A stretch of 20,876 bases of DNA, counting the filler, from Parasitella parasitica NRRL 2501 (Eukaryota; Fungi; Mucoromycota): NCBI GenBank assembly GCA_025201805.1. It is 3 parts of 3 records of this genome, joined end to end, with 100 filler letters (N's around TTAATTAATTAA, not from the genome) between each part and the next. Parts side by side here need not be neighbours in the genome. Positions count along the whole stretch, not along the records: positions 1 to 2,416 come from MU619274.1; 2 more parts are not named here. One strand, written 5' to 3'. The notes beneath the pieces were generated by a model that saw nothing but the letters and a program-made list of their open reading frames with translations, had not been told where the DNA came from and ran no database searches. This document shows positions 1 through 10,063 of the stretch, piece by piece. A program made the translations under genes and the position numbers. The first letter of the stretch is position 1. Each line of letters opens with the position of its first letter.

Positions 1-72
1 AAAACGAAGGAATCCTTCTAAATAAGGAAGGATTAACAGCCATCGTCAAAAAAAAAAACGAAGGAATCCTTT
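1..72 (+). repeat. Left array of a 54-bp tandem unit; inverted partner of 2312-2416 (TIR-like), truncated by window start
   Basis: cgaaggaatcctt recurs at 5 and 59 (period 54). Unit: cgaaggaatccttctaaataaggaaggattaacagccatcgtc-A11. The reverse complement of 1-57 is found at ~2345-2401. Confidence 0.9.
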
Positions 73-291
73 TAAGTTGTTCTGTTTGATAAACTAAAAC
101 ACTCTGAATAGTGTATACCCGCATATGAAAGAACTTTATTAAGGAGTTTTACAACACTAGGATTGGGTTACTTTAATATATGTACGATTCATGAGTGAAT
201 ATTTGGTACAAACAAGATATAATAACAGCCTGATAGGCATGGTAATAGCATAAAATAAAAAAAGAAGCTTTTCAACATACAAATATTAATA

Positions 292-2279
292 TCAGTATTG
301 TTCATCATCAGGGGGAATGTAGGTGCTACTGCTGTCATTGATAGAAGCTTGTGATCTATCAATGCCATATTGTTTTGCTTCAAATATACTTCTTACTGTT
401 TCTTCTCCTACCATCACCCTTCCAGCGTTCTCCTCTCTTAGAAGCCCTTCAATTTCGTCCTGTTCTTTCAAAAGTTGCTGTTAAATAATTTATTATTAGC
501 CATTGTGTCCATATATAAACACCGTCATCATATACATCATGATTACAATCGGGTCATATACATACCTCGAAATCTGAAAGCAACTCAAAGACATGAATCC
601 AGTTATAACGTTCCTGATAAGAAATCGGAATCGTAGCACTGCGTCTCTCTTCAAAAACGAACTTTTTATCTTTATCCATTGATAAAACCGACAAAGTAAT
701 CTTCCGCTTAATTACTTGAATGCTGATAGCCATGTATTTGACAAACGTTTCGAATCGAGCATTCTTCAAATCATATGCCTTTAATACAAGGATTGAGGTC
801 AAGATTCTAATCAATTTTAATGCGTCATCTTGTGTGTGGCTTTGATCTTCGTTTGCTCCGCCCGACGAAGCTTCAAAAACAACACGTTCATCATCCATAT
901 GACCGACTAAGGTTGAATAGCCAAGACCGTCAGCAAAACTAGAAGTTGCTCGTTGAATATCAATGGCTAAGAATAAAACCGTTTGTAAGCTTTTAATTGT
1001 CTTCTCGCACCTATAATATTACGATTAAGCACCAATGATTGGTTTCTGTGTTCAACAAAGCACTACTTTATTTGTATGACAACTTACCACTCGAAATGAA
1101 TATTTTGATGATGGTTTTCAAAAGCAGAAAAAATCGGTATCACCCTGTCAGCGAAAAAAGTTCTTTCATGATTAGAATATATTGGTGTTGTGCGGAAACA
1201 TTTGGATGAGAAGTCAAGAAGAGTATGTTTCACCATACGATAAAAATTTCGATTATCTTGAGTAGTGCTAGCAGGATCAAGATTTGGATAACCATATTCA
1301 AATAACTCAACATGAGTCTTACAAGACGAAAGAGCGTGCTTCAGGATATCAAAAATATTTGAGTGATGATCAATCATGGAAGAAATACTTTGTTGATTGT
1401 CTTGATGTGCTCGAACAACTGTGGCATCTTCTTCTGACATATCTTCAATGCTTTGCATTCTGAAAATATAATGCTTAGATAATTTCTCTCTATCTGCCTT
1501 TGATATTCTTGGAGTATTCAGTGGAATAACCTTAGTTGATAATGTTGTATCAAAGACGATAGTTTTTGATCCTCTTATAATTTTGATCTAAAAAAAAGAT
1601 ATAGACAATATTATGTGAGCAACTTGTACACTTGTTTTATTTTCTTTAACATGGCATCTATATACACACCTTTGTACTTTCAAAACTATTATCACTTGGA
1701 TGTTTGTAACTTGTTGGTGGTGTTGTTGTGACAGACGAAGGATTTGCGCTAGAAATAGGGGATACGAAGGTCGTGCCAGCAGTAGACGATGACGATATAG
1801 ATGGGTTGGAATCAGAGGATGAAGAAACTGGCAATGTTGAATTTGATGAAGGTATATTCAAGTGTGTATTGAAATGTGTTCTAAGACTATCAATACAAAA
1901 ATGAAGATCGTTGCAGATTGCACAAACAAATATTAACGAGTAGCGTAAATTTGGTTGCTTTTGGATAGTTGCTATAGAAATAAATTGATAACTGCCAAAA
2001 AAAAAAAAAGTGTCTATGAGTCAGCAAATAGGAAAAAAAAAAGCGAGAAAAAATTCTTACTAGTTGGAACCACGCGTTTCATTTTTGACTAGAGGATGTT
2101 GTGGAGGTAAGTTGGAAACTAATCAAGATTATAAAAATGTTAAAAAAATATTGTTTAAAGCATTTACACTCTTATATGAACATACCTTCGTGTTTTTTAA
2201 TATGACTATATAGTGTGGTGCGATTAGTCTTGTCTTCTTGACAGACATGGCAACGAAATGTACGCAATACACAATTCAT
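292..2279 (-). CDS. Spliced gene, ~534 aa: two C2H2 zinc fingers, Ser/Thr-rich linker, C-terminal PD-(D/E)XK (REase-fold, Crinkler CR-REase-like) nuclease-like domain
   Basis: Manual model: complement(join(292..477,566..1010,1088..1587,1670..1971 extended to 1991,2061..2118,2186..2279)), i.e. exons 2279-2186, 2118-2061, 1991-1670, 1587-1088, 1010-566, 477-292, total 1605 nt. All five introns are GT-AG, 67-88 nt, phase-consistent, with no internal stops. ZF1 = CHVC-x12-HIKKH; ZF2 = CAIC-x12-HFNTH. The C-terminal FEW|CEK...FADGLG...VVFEASSG...HTQDDALKL...SIQV pattern resembles fungal REase-fold proteins (recognised by eye). The model incorporates track ORFs 1658..1861, 1084..1458 and 554..898. 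Confidence 0.8.
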
Positions 2280-2311
2280 AAATTCAAGAGAAGGAATACT
2301 ACTAAAACAAG

Positions 2312-2416
2312 AAAGATTTCTTCGTTTTTTTTTGACGATGACTGTTTTTTTTTTGACGATGGCTGTTAATCCTTCCTTATTTAGAAGGATTCCTTCGTTT
2401 TTTTTTTGACGATGGC
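2312..2416 (-). repeat. Right array of the 54-bp unit, inverted relative to 1-72; runs into the gap
   Basis: T-run+gacgatggctgttaatccttccttatttagaaggattccttcg at ~2345-2397, the start of a further unit at 2398-2416, and a degenerate partial unit at 2312-2344 (aaagatttcttcg-T9-gacgatgactg). Confidence 0.9.
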
Positions 2417-6567: not shown

Positions 6568-8490
6568 TTACTGGGCCTTGCGCCACGAGTGGGGCACAGC
6601 CATTGGCCGCAAAGCAGCAGCAAGAGAAGGACGAGAAACATCTGTCGGCCGATGGCTCGAGTGATCTGCAGCTATCGGCCGCGAAGCAGCTGCCGCAGGA
6701 AGACGAGAGACATCTATCGGCCGACGACGTGAGTGAGCTACCGAAATTGGCCGCGAAGCAGCAGCAAGAGGAGGACGAGAAACCTCTATCACCCGAGAAC
6801 CGACAGCAACAGGACAAGGAGCACGAGCAGGAAGCCAAGGAACAACTGCAGGGCGAGGCACAATCACTGGGCGAGAGACAAGCTCAGAAGAAGGCAGAGC
6901 CACAGGGCGGACGGAAACATATGGACGCGGGGCGCCAGCAGGAGAAACCCAGCAATTACCCCTGGCAGGAGCCACAATGCGAGCTGCTTTTAGCCTTGCC
7001 ACAAGCTTGCGCGCAATAAGACGGAGGCGACGGGCTACAGCAATGTCCCGAGTTGTTTTTACTACACGGCTGGGAGCTGGCATGCGAGGTACAGTAAATG
7101 TACGCTCCACAGCACGTGTAGGGCCGCGAGAAAGAGTACCAACGAAGACAAAAGCAACAGAAACACCGAAAAGAGCAGAAGAACCGGGAGGCGGAGCAGG
7201 CCAACGAAAGAGACCAGGCTTCACAACACCTGCAGCGCAGGCGGCACGAGCAAGACGACGAAGCTTGCTTGGCGAAGGCTTCTTCAAAACCTTCGCAGCT
7301 CTGGGAAAACCAGACACAGAAAGAGCACTGCCACCACCGCAATCAACACGACGAAGAGATCGACGTACTCCAGAAAGCATAAACTTTACGCCTTTGCCAG
7401 CATCAGAGACGAAAGAACAAGGAAATGCAAACATGCCACCAGGGAAAAACACATCAGACACAACAACAGGATCGCACATAACAGTTGGAGGTAACCTGAC
7501 ACCAAAAGGAAACGGAGCGACAAAGGGAGACATGACAGTAGGTGGCGACATCACAGCAGAAGGCACACGGACAAAAGGAGACATCATAGCAGGACGTGTC
7601 AAAACAACGTAAGGTGGCACACCGGCGAAAGGAGACATAGCTGCACGAGGCAACGGAGAAGCAAGAGGCGGCAAAACATCCAGAGACAATCGATACGCAT
7701 GAGGCAACGGAGACTCATCAAACGGAAAGGGAGAGTCAGGACGCTCCAGCACGTCACCGGGATATTCAATCCAAACATCCACAGGTGGCAATATGGTTAC
7801 GCCACTGTGAACAACACCAACATCAACACCAACACCAGACACCACAGAAACCCCAAACCTAAAGCCTGTGCCTGTGTTTCTGCCTACAGCAGAAACAAGA
7901 CGGCAAGCAACTGGCAACAAGGCAGCAGAGACACCACCACAAGCGGAAAAACCGAAACGAAACAGCAACGAAATCACAGTCTTTACGCCTCTGCTTGCGT
8001 TCCTGCCTACAGCAGAAACGAGGCGGCAAACAACTGGCAATATGGCATCCAAAAGCCGTAAAGAAAGAGGACGCAACACAACAACAGTTGAGCTACGGTC
8101 TGGATACCCAGTTATGGAGCCAGAGCAGCACGCAGAAGACAGAAAACCGGAAATAAACTTGCGGAGACAAGGAAGAAGGATCCAGCGCCATGCACGGAAA
8201 ACAGCGCAACGAGAGAAAATGCATACCTGATAGAGCACAAAACCAGTGCTTTCAGGAAAGCCTCGGAAGAGTACGCTCATCACAAAAGCCCAGAGGTTAA
8301 TGTTCAAAACAATGGTGTAAAGACCACCACTGTATTCTGATGGAAGCGGAGGGAGCGAAGGAAGTGCTTTTGTAAATAATGACCAAAGGAAAAAGATAGC
8401 GAAACAATCAAATATCATTGCAATTTCGTAAATAAAGGAATAAAGAGCAAAACATTGAGACGAAAAGAATTTGTTGCTTTGTACGCACAT
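6568..8490 (-). CDS. 640-aa low-complexity orphan protein (hydrophobic N-terminus; Pro/Val/Arg/Ser/Ala-rich repeats), copy 1
   Basis: 1923-nt ORF coinciding with a GC-richer island, with strong T-ending codon preference in this frame. The stop falls where composition turns AT-rich and is followed by AATAAA. No recognisable domain. Confidence 0.6.
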   Translation of the reverse strand: MCVQSNKFFSSQCFALYSFIYEIAMIFDCFAIFFLWSLFTKALPSLPPLPSEYSGGLYTIVLNINLWAFVMSVLFRGFPESTGFVLYQVCIFSRCAVFRAWRWILLPCLRKFISGFLSSACCSGSITGYPDRSSTVVVLRPLSLRLLDAILPVVCRLVSAVGRNASRGVKTVISLLFRFGFSACGGVSAALLPVACRLVSAVGRNTGTGFRFGVSVVSGVGVDVGVVHSGVTILPPVDVWIEYPGDVLERPDSPFPFDESPLPHAYRLSLDVLPPLASPLPRAAMSPFAGVPPYVVLTRPAMMSPFVRVPSAVMSPPTVMSPFVAPFPFGVRLPPTVMCDPVVVSDVFFPGGMFAFPCSFVSDAGKGVKFMLSGVRRSLRRVDCGGGSALSVSGFPRAAKVLKKPSPSKLRRLARAACAAGVVKPGLFRWPAPPPGSSALFGVSVAFVFVGTLSRGPTRAVERTFTVPRMPAPSRVVKTTRDIAVARRLRLIARKLVARLKAARIVAPARGNCWVSPAGAPRPYVSVRPVALPSSELVSRPVIVPRPAVVPWLPARAPCPVAVGSRVIEVSRPPLAAASRPISVAHSRRRPIDVSRLPAAAASRPIAADHSSHRPTDVSRPSLAAALRPMAVPHSWRKAQ

Positions 8491-8696
8491 CTGCTGCGAC
8501 TGCCATTCTGGACCGCAGCAGAAAATGTTCTTTTAGGATAGCTGCACAAACCATGGAGCATGACATCAATTTTGACCTTACTTAGTAGTCATTTGAAAGT
8601 CAACGCGACATTGCAAAGTATTTGAATACACAGTGAATTTCAACCCCTACTTAGCTCTAAACCGTCGTAGTACCTAAACTTGTGCAAGAGAAAATA

Positions 8697-10063
8697 CCGT
8701 GGATACGAATAAGTCTTGGTCATTTTTATTTTTTGTGTTTTTTTTTAATAATTTAACATAAATATAATCACTTCTAAACCTTGTATACAAAAATTTTGAA
8801 ACATACCCAACTATGACTCTCTTAGATATTACTAGCAAGAACTCAAAGTTCGCCAGCAACTGGACAATTACACTTGCGGTATGATTATCGGCAGAAAACT
8901 TGCGGGACAGAAGATTGAAGAAGATTGAACAAGAAATGAAGATCCCAAGATCTACCATTCACGATCGCATCAAAAGGTTTGAAAAAACTGGCAAGGGAAC
9001 CATTAAAGAACGTACGGGAAGACCTCTGAAGCTGTCTGAAAGCGATCAAAGAACTATGATCCGCAGTTTTAAGGATCAACCCTTTTTCCCTTTGGTCCAA
9101 CACAATGAACAATTGAAAGCCGCTGAGATCAACAGCCATCCTCAGACTTTCATCAAATATGCAGCCATGAATGTTTATGGTTCTTACTCACCAGCATATG
9201 TACCCAAGCTCAAGTCTTTTCATAAGATAAGGCGCCTTGTTTGGGCTAAAGACAAAGTAGATCGGGCTCCTGAACAGTGGAAGAGGGTAATTTGGTCTGA
9301 CGAGTCCAAATTTGATGTTCAGGGCAGCGATGGACGAGTCAGAGTAATCAGGAAAGAAGGAGAAAGATACCACCCAGACCATGAGTCAAACAAAATATGA
9401 AGTTTGGTAATGGTTCCATGATGATTTGGGAATGTTTTTGGGCCGGAGGGTTAGGGTCTCTTGTTATTATAAACGGCAAGATAAACCAGGATGCTTACAT
9501 CAACTTTTTGTCTGCCCACTTTCCCCCATATCTTGAAGAATTGACAACCGAGGAAAGAAAGGAGTTTATCATTCAAGAAGACGGTGCTTCGTGCCATACT
9601 GGCAATTATGCAAACTGGTACAAGAAGAGATGTAATATTGAGGGGCTCCAGTTTTGGCCCGCCCAAAGTCCTGATTTAAACACAATTGAACATGTTTGGG
9701 AATATATTGACAAGCGTATTGAAAGCAGGAGACATGAACCCAAGAATGTAGATGAATTAAAAGCAGCATTGCGTCAGGAATGGTATTCAATACCTGCATC
9801 ATTTTTAGAAAATTTAGTGAACAGCATGAAATCCCGCTGTTTGGCAGTTATCAAAGCCAATGGCGGTAATACCCGATACTAATGATCCTTTCTTTTTTTA
9901 TAGTCTTGAAATAAATATGTCAATCTTCTTAATTTCCAATTTCCAAACGAATCAAATAACCTTTGTTTAACATGTTTACTTGATCAAAGACTTAGTTTGA
10001 AATAACGGTAAAAAAACTGATGTTAAAAAAATAAAAATGACCAAGACTTATTCGTATCCACGG
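8697..10063 (+). mobile_element. Tc1-type (IS630-Tc1-mariner) DNA transposon, 1367 bp, 38-bp TIRs, TA-flanked
   Basis: TA(8695-96)+CCGTGGATACGAATAAGTCTTGGTCATTTTTATTTTTT (8697-8734), mirrored at 10026-10063+TA(10064-65). This resembles typical Tc1 termini (CAGTGG..AAGT.TT.GTCA). It encloses a transposase. The outer boundary is inferred from motif only, because the flanks are also mirrored. Confidence 0.8.
8813..9882 (+). pseudogene. Frameshifted Tc1-like transposase (HTH + DD35E catalytic domain)
   Basis: ATG 8813; RQQLDNYTCGMIIG; IPRSTIHDRIKRF; GRPLKLS; WKRVIWSDESKF; KFGNGSMMIWECF; IQEDGASCH; WPAQSPDLNTIEHVW; LVNSMKSRCLAVIKANGGNTRY*. Frameshifts near 8850, 8920 and 9385-9397. Confidence 0.93.

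Follow-up and report, generated by a model that had tools for sequence, protein, structure and literature searches.

Positions 1 to 2416 of the window (the whole 20,876-nucleotide stretch of Parasitella parasitica NRRL 2501 DNA that was analyzed, filler included) hold an intact gene for a protein with zinc fingers and a predicted nuclease fold, situated between two inverted arms. With moderate confidence, we favor the reading that a Tc1/mariner composite or inverted duplication encloses the gene as cargo, in which case the gene would most likely be a passenger and not the driver of the structure. A preliminary description of this piece had made a weightier claim, that of a eukaryotic DNA transposon run by an enzyme with a restriction endonuclease (REase) fold; this was not borne out, and a known DDE element gives the real termini.

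The gene lies on the minus strand and comprises six exons (Table 1), with a joined frame of 1605 nt that is free of stops and encodes 534 codons plus the stop codon. All five introns have GT-AG borders. A 1653-nt RNA contig from run X5 (organism A) matches the piece at 100% identity with zero mismatches, in blocks at 240-477, 566-1008, 1086-1587, 1670-1991, 2061-2118, and 2186-2274. It skips exactly the five predicted introns, the ends of which read CT..AC on the plus strand, and its 5′ end at 2274 is 5 nt short of the ATG (2279). As the contig aligns around them without a mismatch, the five introns are confirmed; the gene is real, spliced, and transcribed, and the intact, stop-free six-exon model of the preliminary description was upheld. 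The N terminus encoded by exon 1 is also conserved in Circinella, and the exon 4/5 junction splits the W of a WCE motif. Run X22, which carries the same species label, gave short contigs only, with differences that were all C>T or G>A, and it was considered both as a sign of RIP and as a sign that the locus is absent from another strain. The mismatch counts were 34 and 42, and the aligned regions contain exactly as many G (34) or C (42) bases; the library is therefore of the bisulfite type, so that neither reading was retained.

Table 1. Positions of the exons, conserved codons, and repeat units in the piece, counted along the window
Feature	Position	Strand	Remarks
Right arm, visible inner end	2345-2416		Full unit, followed by the start of the next unit (2398-2416)
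Degenerate units by the ATG	2285-2305 and 2309-2342 (region 2285-2344)		
Exon 1	2279-2186	-	ATG at 2279-2277; first C2H2 finger at 2190-2258; RNA contig up to 2274
Exon 2	2118-2061	-	58 nt; reading frame and RNA contig
Exon 3	1991-1670	-	Second C2H2 finger at 1862-1930 and serine-rich linker
Exon 4	1587-1088	-	Helical N-terminal part of the PD-(D/E)XK-like domain, with a conserved HERT helix
Exon 5	1010-566	-	Strands and helix at the core of the PD-(D/E)XK-like domain
Conserved codons in exon 5	D 929-931, E 872-874, S 866-868, H 836-838	-	
Conserved codons in exon 5 (continued)	D 824-826, K 815-817, R 641-643, P 626-628	-	
Exon 6	477-292	-	Stop codon (292-294) included
3′ UTR	240-291	-	End of RNA contig at 240
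Left arm, visible inner end	1-75		Full 54-nt unit at 1-54 and partial second unit at 55-75

In the encoded protein, two putative C2H2 fingers are followed by a serine-rich, disordered linker and, at the C terminus, by a domain for which a PD-(D/E)XK (restriction endonuclease) fold is predicted. The pattern C-x2-C-x12-H-x3-H can be seen by eye in both fingers, with zf-C2H2_4 scores of 18.6 and 12.8 bits that lie under the 27-bit cutoff, and fingers occupy the same positions in paralogue L028 and in the Umbelopsis protein P0103. Fold and similarity searches used single exons and database homologues as queries. The AF2 model of P0103 has a pLDDT of >90 over residues 240-560. Using VIA-align, it was found to match the nuclease domain of DrdV (Z 9.2, rmsd 3.2, 141 aligned), as well as BpuSI (Z 8.3), HsdR, TT1808, NucC, and EcoRI, and a model of exon 5 alone (pLDDT 90.2) matched REase-fold proteins at Z 5-7, values of Z 5-9 being middling by the tool's own calibration. 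Foldseek comparison of the full-length model with the PDB gave no match at E ≤ 0.001, the sequence search of the PDB gave none, and Pfam scans returned only zinc finger and chance-level matches, with no model for the C-terminal domain. On the basis of the structure models, this domain is predicted to adopt the alpha-beta-beta-beta-alpha-beta core fold of PD-(D/E)XK enzymes. The family motifs E-R-T, WCE, D, ExS, H..D..K, and RSA..P are all retained in this gene, and the D of ADG and the E of FEASS are among the most conserved residues of the family, being present in 37 and 36 of 41 sequences, respectively. The canonical lysine of the (D/E)xK motif is replaced by S, and a K on the next helix is conserved in 39 of the 41. 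The earlier assignment of C2H2 fingers and an REase-fold domain, with the ADG and EASS residues expected in its active site, agrees with this prediction in the fold and in the conservation of these residues, and the likely molecular function would be zinc finger-guided, metal-dependent cleavage or binding of DNA.

Relatives of the gene form a family of at least 567 representative clusters at 50% identity in early-diverging fungi (Mucoromycota and chytrids), listed in databases only as "hypothetical protein" (in Umbelopsis, Phycomyces, Circinella, Fennellomyces, Phlyctochytrium, and Borealophlyctis). The family has neither a name nor a Pfam model, and its N-terminal DNA-binding modules are interchangeable. 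A link to GCR1_C and Cryptons was considered from a Pfam GCR1_C match on Circinella P0018, which is confined to the first 38 residues; because these residues stem from ~200 nt inserted into exon 4, and the insert is a repeat of the P. parasitica genome, GCR1_C does not belong to the family. For a Phycomyces member labeled "Ndc10 domain-containing" in UniRef, Pfam gave no such domain, and a profile comparison with a PD..EVK-type open reading frame beside another Tc1 copy was not significant. Approximately 12 paralogues are present in the P. parasitica genome, which are only 24-36% identical (the best values being 36% for exon 5 and 29-30% for exon 4), and no recent near-identical copy of the gene was found in it. 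The inspected paralogues do not have the 54-nt inverted repeats described below, and no flanking inverted repeats were found around the Umbelopsis and Phlyctochytrium relatives. Tc1-like fragments are located near 5 of the 12 paralogue loci, in an arrangement that is never symmetric. A metagenome scan with the exon 5 protein gave no match.

Both ends of the piece carry the same 54-nt unit in inverted orientation, as had been described, with positions 1-57 and 2345-2401 being 100% complementary over 57 nt. On direct reading, every unit contains three GAAGGA/TCCTTC hexamers. Approximately 1.4 units are visible on the left and two plus degenerate copies on the right, where the partial unit runs into a scaffold gap; inverted units are thus present, but with so few of them visible the word "arrays" was generous. 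The depth of the unit in reads of organism B was ~4-6 times that of the gene body, and the arrays are therefore short. A single contig of organism B, a related organism assembled independently, covers 50-2402 at ~98.8% identity with the same layout, and consequently the inverted layout is no assembly artifact of the P. parasitica genome. The stop codon is 217 nt from the left unit, in line with the ~220 nt originally given, whereas the distance from the ATG is 6 nt to the degenerate unit at 2285-2305 and 66 nt to the first full unit, and not ~33 nt. The region that holds the degenerate units is probably the promoter region of the gene. Searches of the 32.8-Mb genome with the 75-nt end and with a 24-nt core (≤3 mismatches) recovered the unit only at the two ends of the piece, and the core had zero matches among JGI metagenome contigs. 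Similarity between the units and the complete Tc1/mariner copy L041 was not significant, suggesting from sequence comparison that they are non-Tc1 sequence inside the arms.

The piece is a contig flanked by scaffold gaps of 1110 N on the left (C38:62157-63266) and 1345 N on the right (C38:65683-67027). Sequences past the two gaps are reverse complements of one another and code for the last 124 residues of a DDE_3 transposase, with L004:7073-7444 matching Pfam DDE_3 (PF13358) at an E value of 2.6e-20 and 73 bits (cutoff, 28.6) and a complete Tc1/mariner copy matching it at 5e-27. The earlier remark that no DDE motif could be recognized holds inside the piece, but a DDE_3 transposase lies just past each gap. 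The flanking copies share 99% identity with one another and 97-98% with copies on C166 and C102, in a family with 43 matches in the genome, four of them at 97-100% identity. They bracket the cargo as the two copies of a composite do, one past each gap in inverted orientation, facing each other with their 5′ ends (heads) inward and the gene between them. Their outer ends read TA-CAGTTAGCGCAAC at L004 1639-1653 and the inverse at 7574-7588. The terminal inverted repeats (TIRs) have a CAGT-like start and repeated subterminal sites and are visible at the outer ends, the inner ends being in the gaps; the TA that flanks them is expected at any Tc1 end and hence is uninformative, proving no target site duplication of the composite. 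The junctions at which the units meet the Tc1 5′ ends also fall in the gaps, where the makeup of the arms is deduced from the gap sizes and the depth of an organism B contig. In L041, a complete copy of 1.56 kb, ~980 nt precede the break point, a length that takes up almost all of the gaps, and the organism B contig, of 2019 nt and at twice the body depth, extends outward from 2406 and fits an arm of ~2 kb. Each arm would thus be ~2 kb and the whole inverted-repeat structure ~6 kb, with outer limits at C38:61639 and C38:67588 and a unique center of ~2.3 kb; the piece comprises this center and the innermost 60-130 nt of the structure around it. The full gene-plus-arms structure is present at one locus in this genome.

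A rearranged, decayed pseudogene copy of the gene was identified in Rhizopus stolonifer. It is 83-88% identical in exons, introns, UTR, and 3′ flank, and the homology ends at position 74 of the piece, the inner edge of the 54-nt unit. Host genes at that locus are only 65-73% identical (histone H2A, 83%), the copy being 13-20 points higher, and they map to C106, C137, and C168 and not to C38, so the site is nonsyntenic. Adjoining the exon 2 remnant is a remnant of a Tc1 3′ TIR in the same relative orientation as in P. parasitica, comprising ~80 nt on one side only, so that a single end is recognizable; the body of the copy is inverted relative to an exon 2-3 fragment, and a recognizable 54-nt array is absent. 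That the R. stolonifer copy is far more similar than the host genes and lies at a different locus suggests that a unit of gene plus TIR moved between lineages, and it is plausible that the copy descended from the same composite. In Circinella umbellata, the 5′ half of the gene is duplicated head to head, with 93-98% identity, and the duplication is centered on the same AAGGAATCCTTC palindrome as is seen here. The core palindrome of the 54-nt unit is thus also situated shortly before the ATG in the Circinella homologue, as a 12-nt match that is not significant alone (E = 0.56). The gene shares 64-71% nucleotide identity with its Circinella counterpart and host genes share 67-79%.

Taken as a cargo gene within a Tc1/mariner composite or inverted duplication, the locus could have acquired its arms by the inverted duplication of a Tc1/mariner copy situated beside the promoter region with its repeats, through aberrant or alternative transposition or a second local insertion. 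From the center, each arm would then pass through a few 54-nt units into a complete Tc1/mariner (DDE_3) element with its 5′ end facing the center, and the outer limit on both sides would be the 3′ TIR of the element by a TA. A DDE transposase using the two outer TIRs could move the whole as a composite. We regard as doubtful the further step that the ~6-kb structure is a functional Tc1/mariner composite with an expressed cargo that crossed between the P. parasitica and R. stolonifer lineages; a bolder version of the composite reading would have the cargo nuclease itself promoting inverted rearrangements around the gene in three genomes. A possible but less likely explanation is that a resident host gene in a spot rich in transposable elements (TEs) received two local Tc1/mariner insertions or underwent a local inverted duplication, the structure never having been mobile as a unit, with the R. 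stolonifer similarity due to a separate transfer of the gene alone, to introgression, or to a mislabeled lineage. Consistent with this, the Tc1 family is young and multicopy, with 97-99% identity, the asymmetric Tc1-like fragments near the paralogues suggest that such genes tend toward TE-rich DNA, a single such locus exists in the genome, and the divergence from Circinella fits that of the host genes, as vertical descent predicts. However, both arms stop exactly at a Tc1 terminus and carry mirror-image 54-nt units, which two independent insertions fail to explain, and the R. stolonifer remnant again adjoins a Tc1 TIR, with identity that is uniform and exceeds that of the host genes.

Inverted rearrangements are found at all three of the loci concerned (the P. 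parasitica arms, the C. umbellata head-to-head duplication, and the R. stolonifer exon 2-3 fragment), and one protein combines DNA-binding fingers with a nuclease fold, as might be expected of a selfish homing-like nuclease whose fingers recognize the GAAGGA-type palindromes of the unit and whose cuts lead, by fold-back repair, to recurrent inverted rearrangements. We consider such an origin improbable, as the 12-nt motif match falls short of significance, the Umbelopsis and Phlyctochytrium relatives have no such repeats, and short palindromes can drive fold-back duplication without a dedicated nuclease. More improbable by far is an autonomous TIR transposon of a new class, as originally proposed, with the PD-(D/E)XK protein as its transposase and the 54-nt arrays as its ends. 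A DNA-binding module and a nuclease fold between inverted repeats, together with the similarity to R. stolonifer, which resembles horizontal transfer, would suit it, but the 54-mer is confined to one locus and recent copies of the gene are lacking in the genome, the dispersed copies with inverted ends looked for with both having not been found there. The paralogues are too divergent, family members elsewhere do not have flanking TIRs, and the R. stolonifer gene is accompanied by a Tc1 TIR remnant and by no recognizable 54-nt array. Nor are the arrays terminal, since the inverted repeat continues into the DDE_3 Tc1/mariner copies. The preliminary description had itself named as evidence against its proposal that the repeats might be those of a known DDE element or of two insertions, and the Tc1/mariner copies past the gaps come close to this. 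Its fallback, capture by another element, was nearer the mark, although that element is Tc1/mariner and not a foldback, CACTA, or MULE element.

The flanking copies share with Tc1/mariner (DDE_3) transposons the DDE_3 transposase, CAGT-type TIRs, TA flanks, and the occurrence of copies with 97-99% identity. Like the paired elements of a bacterial composite transposon, they enclose a cargo segment as two inverted copies; as a Tc1/mariner composite, the structure differs in that its arms additionally hold non-Tc1 54-nt units, and it may move as a whole unit. To our knowledge, cargo-carrying Tc1/mariner composites have rarely been described in eukaryotes. Among transposon superfamilies, Tc1/mariner is the one best known to transfer horizontally, and a gene between facing Tc1/mariner copies, with a copy in R. 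stolonifer that is too similar, is a candidate for cargo transfer by a fungal composite. Inverted duplication by alternative (reversed-ends or sister chromatid) transposition is documented for hAT and P elements, and the arms seen with Ac/Ds or P elements likewise are inverted, have a transposon terminus as their exact starting point, and take in neighboring host sequence; we know of no demonstration of alternative transposition for Tc1/mariner in fungi. TnsA of Tn7 is a PD-(D/E)XK-fold protein that joins a DDE protein in transposition. No sequence or operon-like relationship was found between it and the protein described here, whose gene and that of the DDE transposase are separate eukaryotic genes.

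The predicted core fold is held in common with type IIG/IIL and type I restriction enzymes (DrdV 7lo5, BpuSI 3s1s, and HsdR 3h1t) and with DUF820/TT1808-type proteins, as are a conserved acidic residue on the first helix, a D that starts strand 2, and an E on strand 3; Pfam and PDB sequence searches detected no sequence similarity between these nuclease domains and that of the gene. The restriction enzymes have D...ExK, whereas the fungal family has D...ExS followed by a conserved H..D..K helix, and its members are eukaryotic, spliced, and fused to C2H2 fingers or other N-terminal modules. Pfam scans of the family identified no NTPase, HTH, or kinase partner domain of the Crinkler type, and where Crinkler (CRN) effectors have a header, this protein has a pair of C2H2 fingers at its N terminus. 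With its confidently predicted nuclease fold, the family is a good target for biochemical characterization; CRN effectors likewise include eukaryotic REase-fold domains in lineage-expanded families, fungi among them.

The piece at positions 1 to 2416 corresponds to G000:C38:63267-65682 in the Parasitella parasitica NRRL 2501 assembly (32.8 Mb, 450 scaffolds). Rather than being a free-standing contig, it is internal to a 235-kb scaffold and is flanked by N-runs whose lengths (left, 1110; right, 1345) are estimates by the assembler; each end thus marks where assembly broke off within a repeat. The full 54-nt units at the two ends (within 1-57 and 2345-2401) are perfectly complementary; GAAGGA/TCCTTC hexamers occur three times per unit, and a pair of them makes up a palindrome. 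In a different organism (public read run X4, organism B), one contig spans 50-2402 at approximately 98.8% identity, so the layout of repeats and gene is real, and as the k-mer depth of the unit in that run was just ~4 to 6 times that of the gene body, there are few units per arm. Searches of the 32.8-Mb genome with the terminal 75 nt, and with a core of 24 nt allowing up to three mismatches, matched only the two ends of the piece, and the unit is unique to this locus within it.

The sequences beyond the two gaps are reverse complements of each other, share 99% identity over 500 nt, and code for the last 124 residues of a Tc1/mariner (DDE_3) transposase (Pfam E = 2.6e-20). Their outer ends read TA-CAGTTAGCGCAAC on one side and the inverse on the other, CCGCCCTTTGAG motifs recur subterminally, and the flanks outside these termini are unrelated to each other. 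The 5' halves of both copies are directed into the gaps, toward the piece. In a complete 1.56-kb copy on scaffold C166 (locus L041, the one read of the C166 and C102 copies), ~980 nt lie upstream of the break point, which would leave ~130 and ~365 nt in the two gaps for extra 54-nt units; no such unit was found within the complete copy. The gene would then sit between two mutually inverted sets of a few units each, with a minus-strand Tc1 copy outside the left set and a plus-strand copy outside the right set, giving a structure of ~5.9 to 6.3 kb edged by Tc1 3' TIRs and TA, for which the content of the gaps is inferred. A 2019-nt contig running outward from 2406 in X4, with a depth double that of the gene body, is as expected for a two-copy arm of ~2 kb. 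In the C166 copy, the reading frame shifts between the N-terminal and DDE parts (L041:1664-1793), through either a frameshift in the copy itself or an error in the assembly.

Three-frame translation and a splice-site model defined a six-exon gene on the minus strand, with GT-AG introns throughout (67 to 88 nt, GC content 19 to 31%) and joined exons of 1605 nt with a sole stop at the end. The five introns, for which confirmation by RNA-seq had been proposed, are exactly absent from a 1653-nt contig of public reads (run X5, organism A) that matches the piece with no mismatches; the gene is therefore transcribed and processed. This contig gives a 3' untranslated region of ~52 nt and at its other end stops 5 nt before the ATG, so the start codon is inferred; the ATG at 2279 is the probable start given an N terminus conserved in Circinella homologues, and the frame upstream of it is open up to the edge of the piece.

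Features of the piece and of the sequences across the adjoining gaps
Feature	Position	Strand	Basis
Exon 1	2279-2186	-	splice model
Exon 2	2118-2061	-	splice model
Exon 3	1991-1670	-	splice model
Exon 4	1587-1088	-	splice model
Exon 5	1010-566	-	splice model
Exon 6	477-292	-	splice model
Spliced contig X5	240-477, 566-1008, 1086-1587, 1670-1991, 2061-2118, 2186-2274		public reads
Left inverted unit	1-57		complementary to 2345-2401
Partial second unit	55-75		
Degenerate unit copies	2285-2342		
Right inverted unit	2345-2401		complementary to 1-57
Start of further unit	2398-2416		
Sequence left of left gap, including Tc1 3' part	L004 1393-2156		
Sequence right of right gap, including Tc1 3' part	L004 7028-7600		

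Exons 1 and 3 each encode a C-x2-C-x12-H-x3-H finger, both falling below the Pfam threshold for C2H2, with a serine-rich linker after the second; exons 4 to 6, searched singly, gave no Pfam match. Searching 1.84 billion proteins with a profile of the exon 5 regions from this gene and eight paralogues retrieved 567 representative clusters, of which 335 had E <= 1e-10. Full-length members (440 to 570 aa) contain no Pfam domains and are annotated solely as hypothetical proteins in Umbelopsis, Phycomyces, Circinella, Fennellomyces, and the chytrids Phlyctochytrium and Borealophlyctis; the ESM Atlas likewise places the family in Mucoromycota. The N termini of most members are without fingers, and two initial C2H2 fingers are also present in the Umbelopsis homologue P0103 and the paralogue on scaffold C105 (L028).

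An AlphaFold2 model of P0103, from a 41-sequence alignment, had pLDDT values above 90 over residues 240 to 560. Foldseek returned no significant match with this model, while VIA-align against 48,161 PDB representatives gave matches dominated by PD-(D/E)XK proteins: the DrdV nuclease domain (Z 9.2, rmsd 3.2, 141 aligned), BpuSI (Z 8.3), and HsdR, TT1808, NucC, SgrAI, EcoRI, NgoMIV, McrC, Can2, and Hjc, together with a human mitoribosomal protein chain (Z 10.5 and 9.7). Exon 5 of the piece alone (148 aa) folded at a mean pLDDT of 90.2 and matched the same proteins at Z 5 to 7. Conservation within the family is highest at E-R-T (first core helix), WCE (strand 1), D (start of strand 2), E-x-S (strand 3), H..D..K (following helix), and a later R-S-A..P, all retained by this gene. 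The predicted models thus support a restriction-endonuclease fold for the C-terminal domain, as proposed previously, including the D of ADG and the E of FEASS, albeit with middling Z scores and a serine replacing the canonical lysine; the encoded protein may be a nuclease. Approximately 700 nt upstream of the C166 Tc1 copy, an open frame (L041:2-340; G000:C166:20002-20340) shows a canonical-looking PD...GEVK...H..D..LKL pattern, with no Pfam match and no significant profile comparison with the gene family.

No recent copies of the gene were found in this genome; ~12 dispersed paralogues share 24 to 36% identity with it, and only over the exon 4-5 domain. The Umbelopsis and Phlyctochytrium homologues have no flanking inverted repeats. 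In Rhizopus stolonifer (GCA_977110985.1), a copy on a 4.97-Mb contig (L044:9316-11309), between a MutS homologue and a GT15 glycosyltransferase, is a rearranged pseudogene annotated as a 139-aa product: exon 1 is absent, exons 4 and 6 are frameshifted, exon 5 has a stop, and an exon 2-3 fragment lies inverted downstream of the 3' end. Identity to the piece is an even 83 to 88% over exons, introns, 3' UTR, and 3' flank and ends precisely at the left unit's inner edge (position 74). Host genes at that locus share 65% (MutS homologue), 70% (sterol methyltransferase), 71% (GT15), 73% (STE-type factor), 80% (MADS-box gene), and 83% (histone H2A) identity with their counterparts here, which map to C106, C137, and C168, not C38. 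Circinella umbellata is about as distant (host genes 67 to 79%), but its copy of this gene is just 64 to 71% identical; by this contrast, the R. stolonifer copy appears too similar for vertical descent, and it is at a nonsyntenic site. Horizontal transfer, in whichever direction, could account for this. The exon 2 remnant is joined directly to ~80 nt of an outward-pointing Tc1 3' TIR, as would be expected had a deletion taken out exon 1 along with the units and the greater part of the right-hand Tc1 copy. The R. stolonifer data hint, independently of the arm structure, that the gene and a Tc1 end may travel together.

We somewhat favor the gene being a passenger in a Tc1/mariner composite or inverted duplication, a structure that may have moved as a unit. 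Arms that carry mirrored non-Tc1 units and end exactly at a transposon terminus argue against two unrelated insertions and for a duplication tied to transposition, or a composite. A resident gene in TE-rich DNA is a less probable but serious alternative; Tc1-like fragments occur near 5 of the 12 paralogue loci in inconsistent arrangements.

That the gene is itself a selfish nuclease is speculative and improbable; the idea is prompted by inverted rearrangements surrounding it in three genomes, one of them a head-to-head duplication in Circinella centered on the core palindrome of the unit. Least credible is the autonomous transposon of the preliminary description, driven by the REase-fold protein with the 54-nt arrays as its ends: this mechanism requires ends that are terminal and recurrent, and the arrays are neither, while a DDE element provides true termini on both sides.

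Several further rearrangements and sequence variants were observed. In Umbelopsis sp. (GCA_025677805.1), a foldback-like structure of nested inverted repeats and 19-nt tandem units (L047:13502-14855) lies 3.4 kb downstream of a family member, unconnected with the gene boundaries. At 1665-1674, one copy out of two or more in run X6 (organism C) has an insertion with mutually inverted loose ends (AAAAGTACCCTAAAAATC... and its complement) and a reference overlap of ~10 nt at the exon 3/intron 3 border, which looks like a TIR element with a target duplication. Contigs from X22 were rejected as a hypermutated or absent copy, as this is a bisulfite-type library; conversion of 34/34 G or 42/42 C over 391-680 and 1012-1305, all CpG sites included, suggests that cytosine methylation is absent there in this sample. 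Metagenome contigs carry a frameshifted gene copy of ~95% identity, and genome runs under ten other organism labels contained 41 to 67% of the 31-mers, equivalent to ~97 to 99% identity; these organisms may simply be close relatives. The duplication in C. umbellata (GCA_025093555.1; L045:7417-9848) involves the 5' half of the gene (exons 1 to 4), with arms (7417-8520 and 8548-9848) 93 to 98% complementary around a 27-nt center containing AAGGAATCCTTC; the ATGs are ~20 nt apart, and one copy extends into the full gene, while the other leads to an annotated product of 548 aa. Exon 4 of the Circinella copy holds a ~200-nt insertion (L045:9900-10105) that codes for a GCR1_C-like peptide, matches repeats of the Parasitella genome at G000:C126:405-567 and G000:C101:119234-119396 with 75 to 76% identity, and misled the Circinella annotation; it probably derives from part of a different mobile element.
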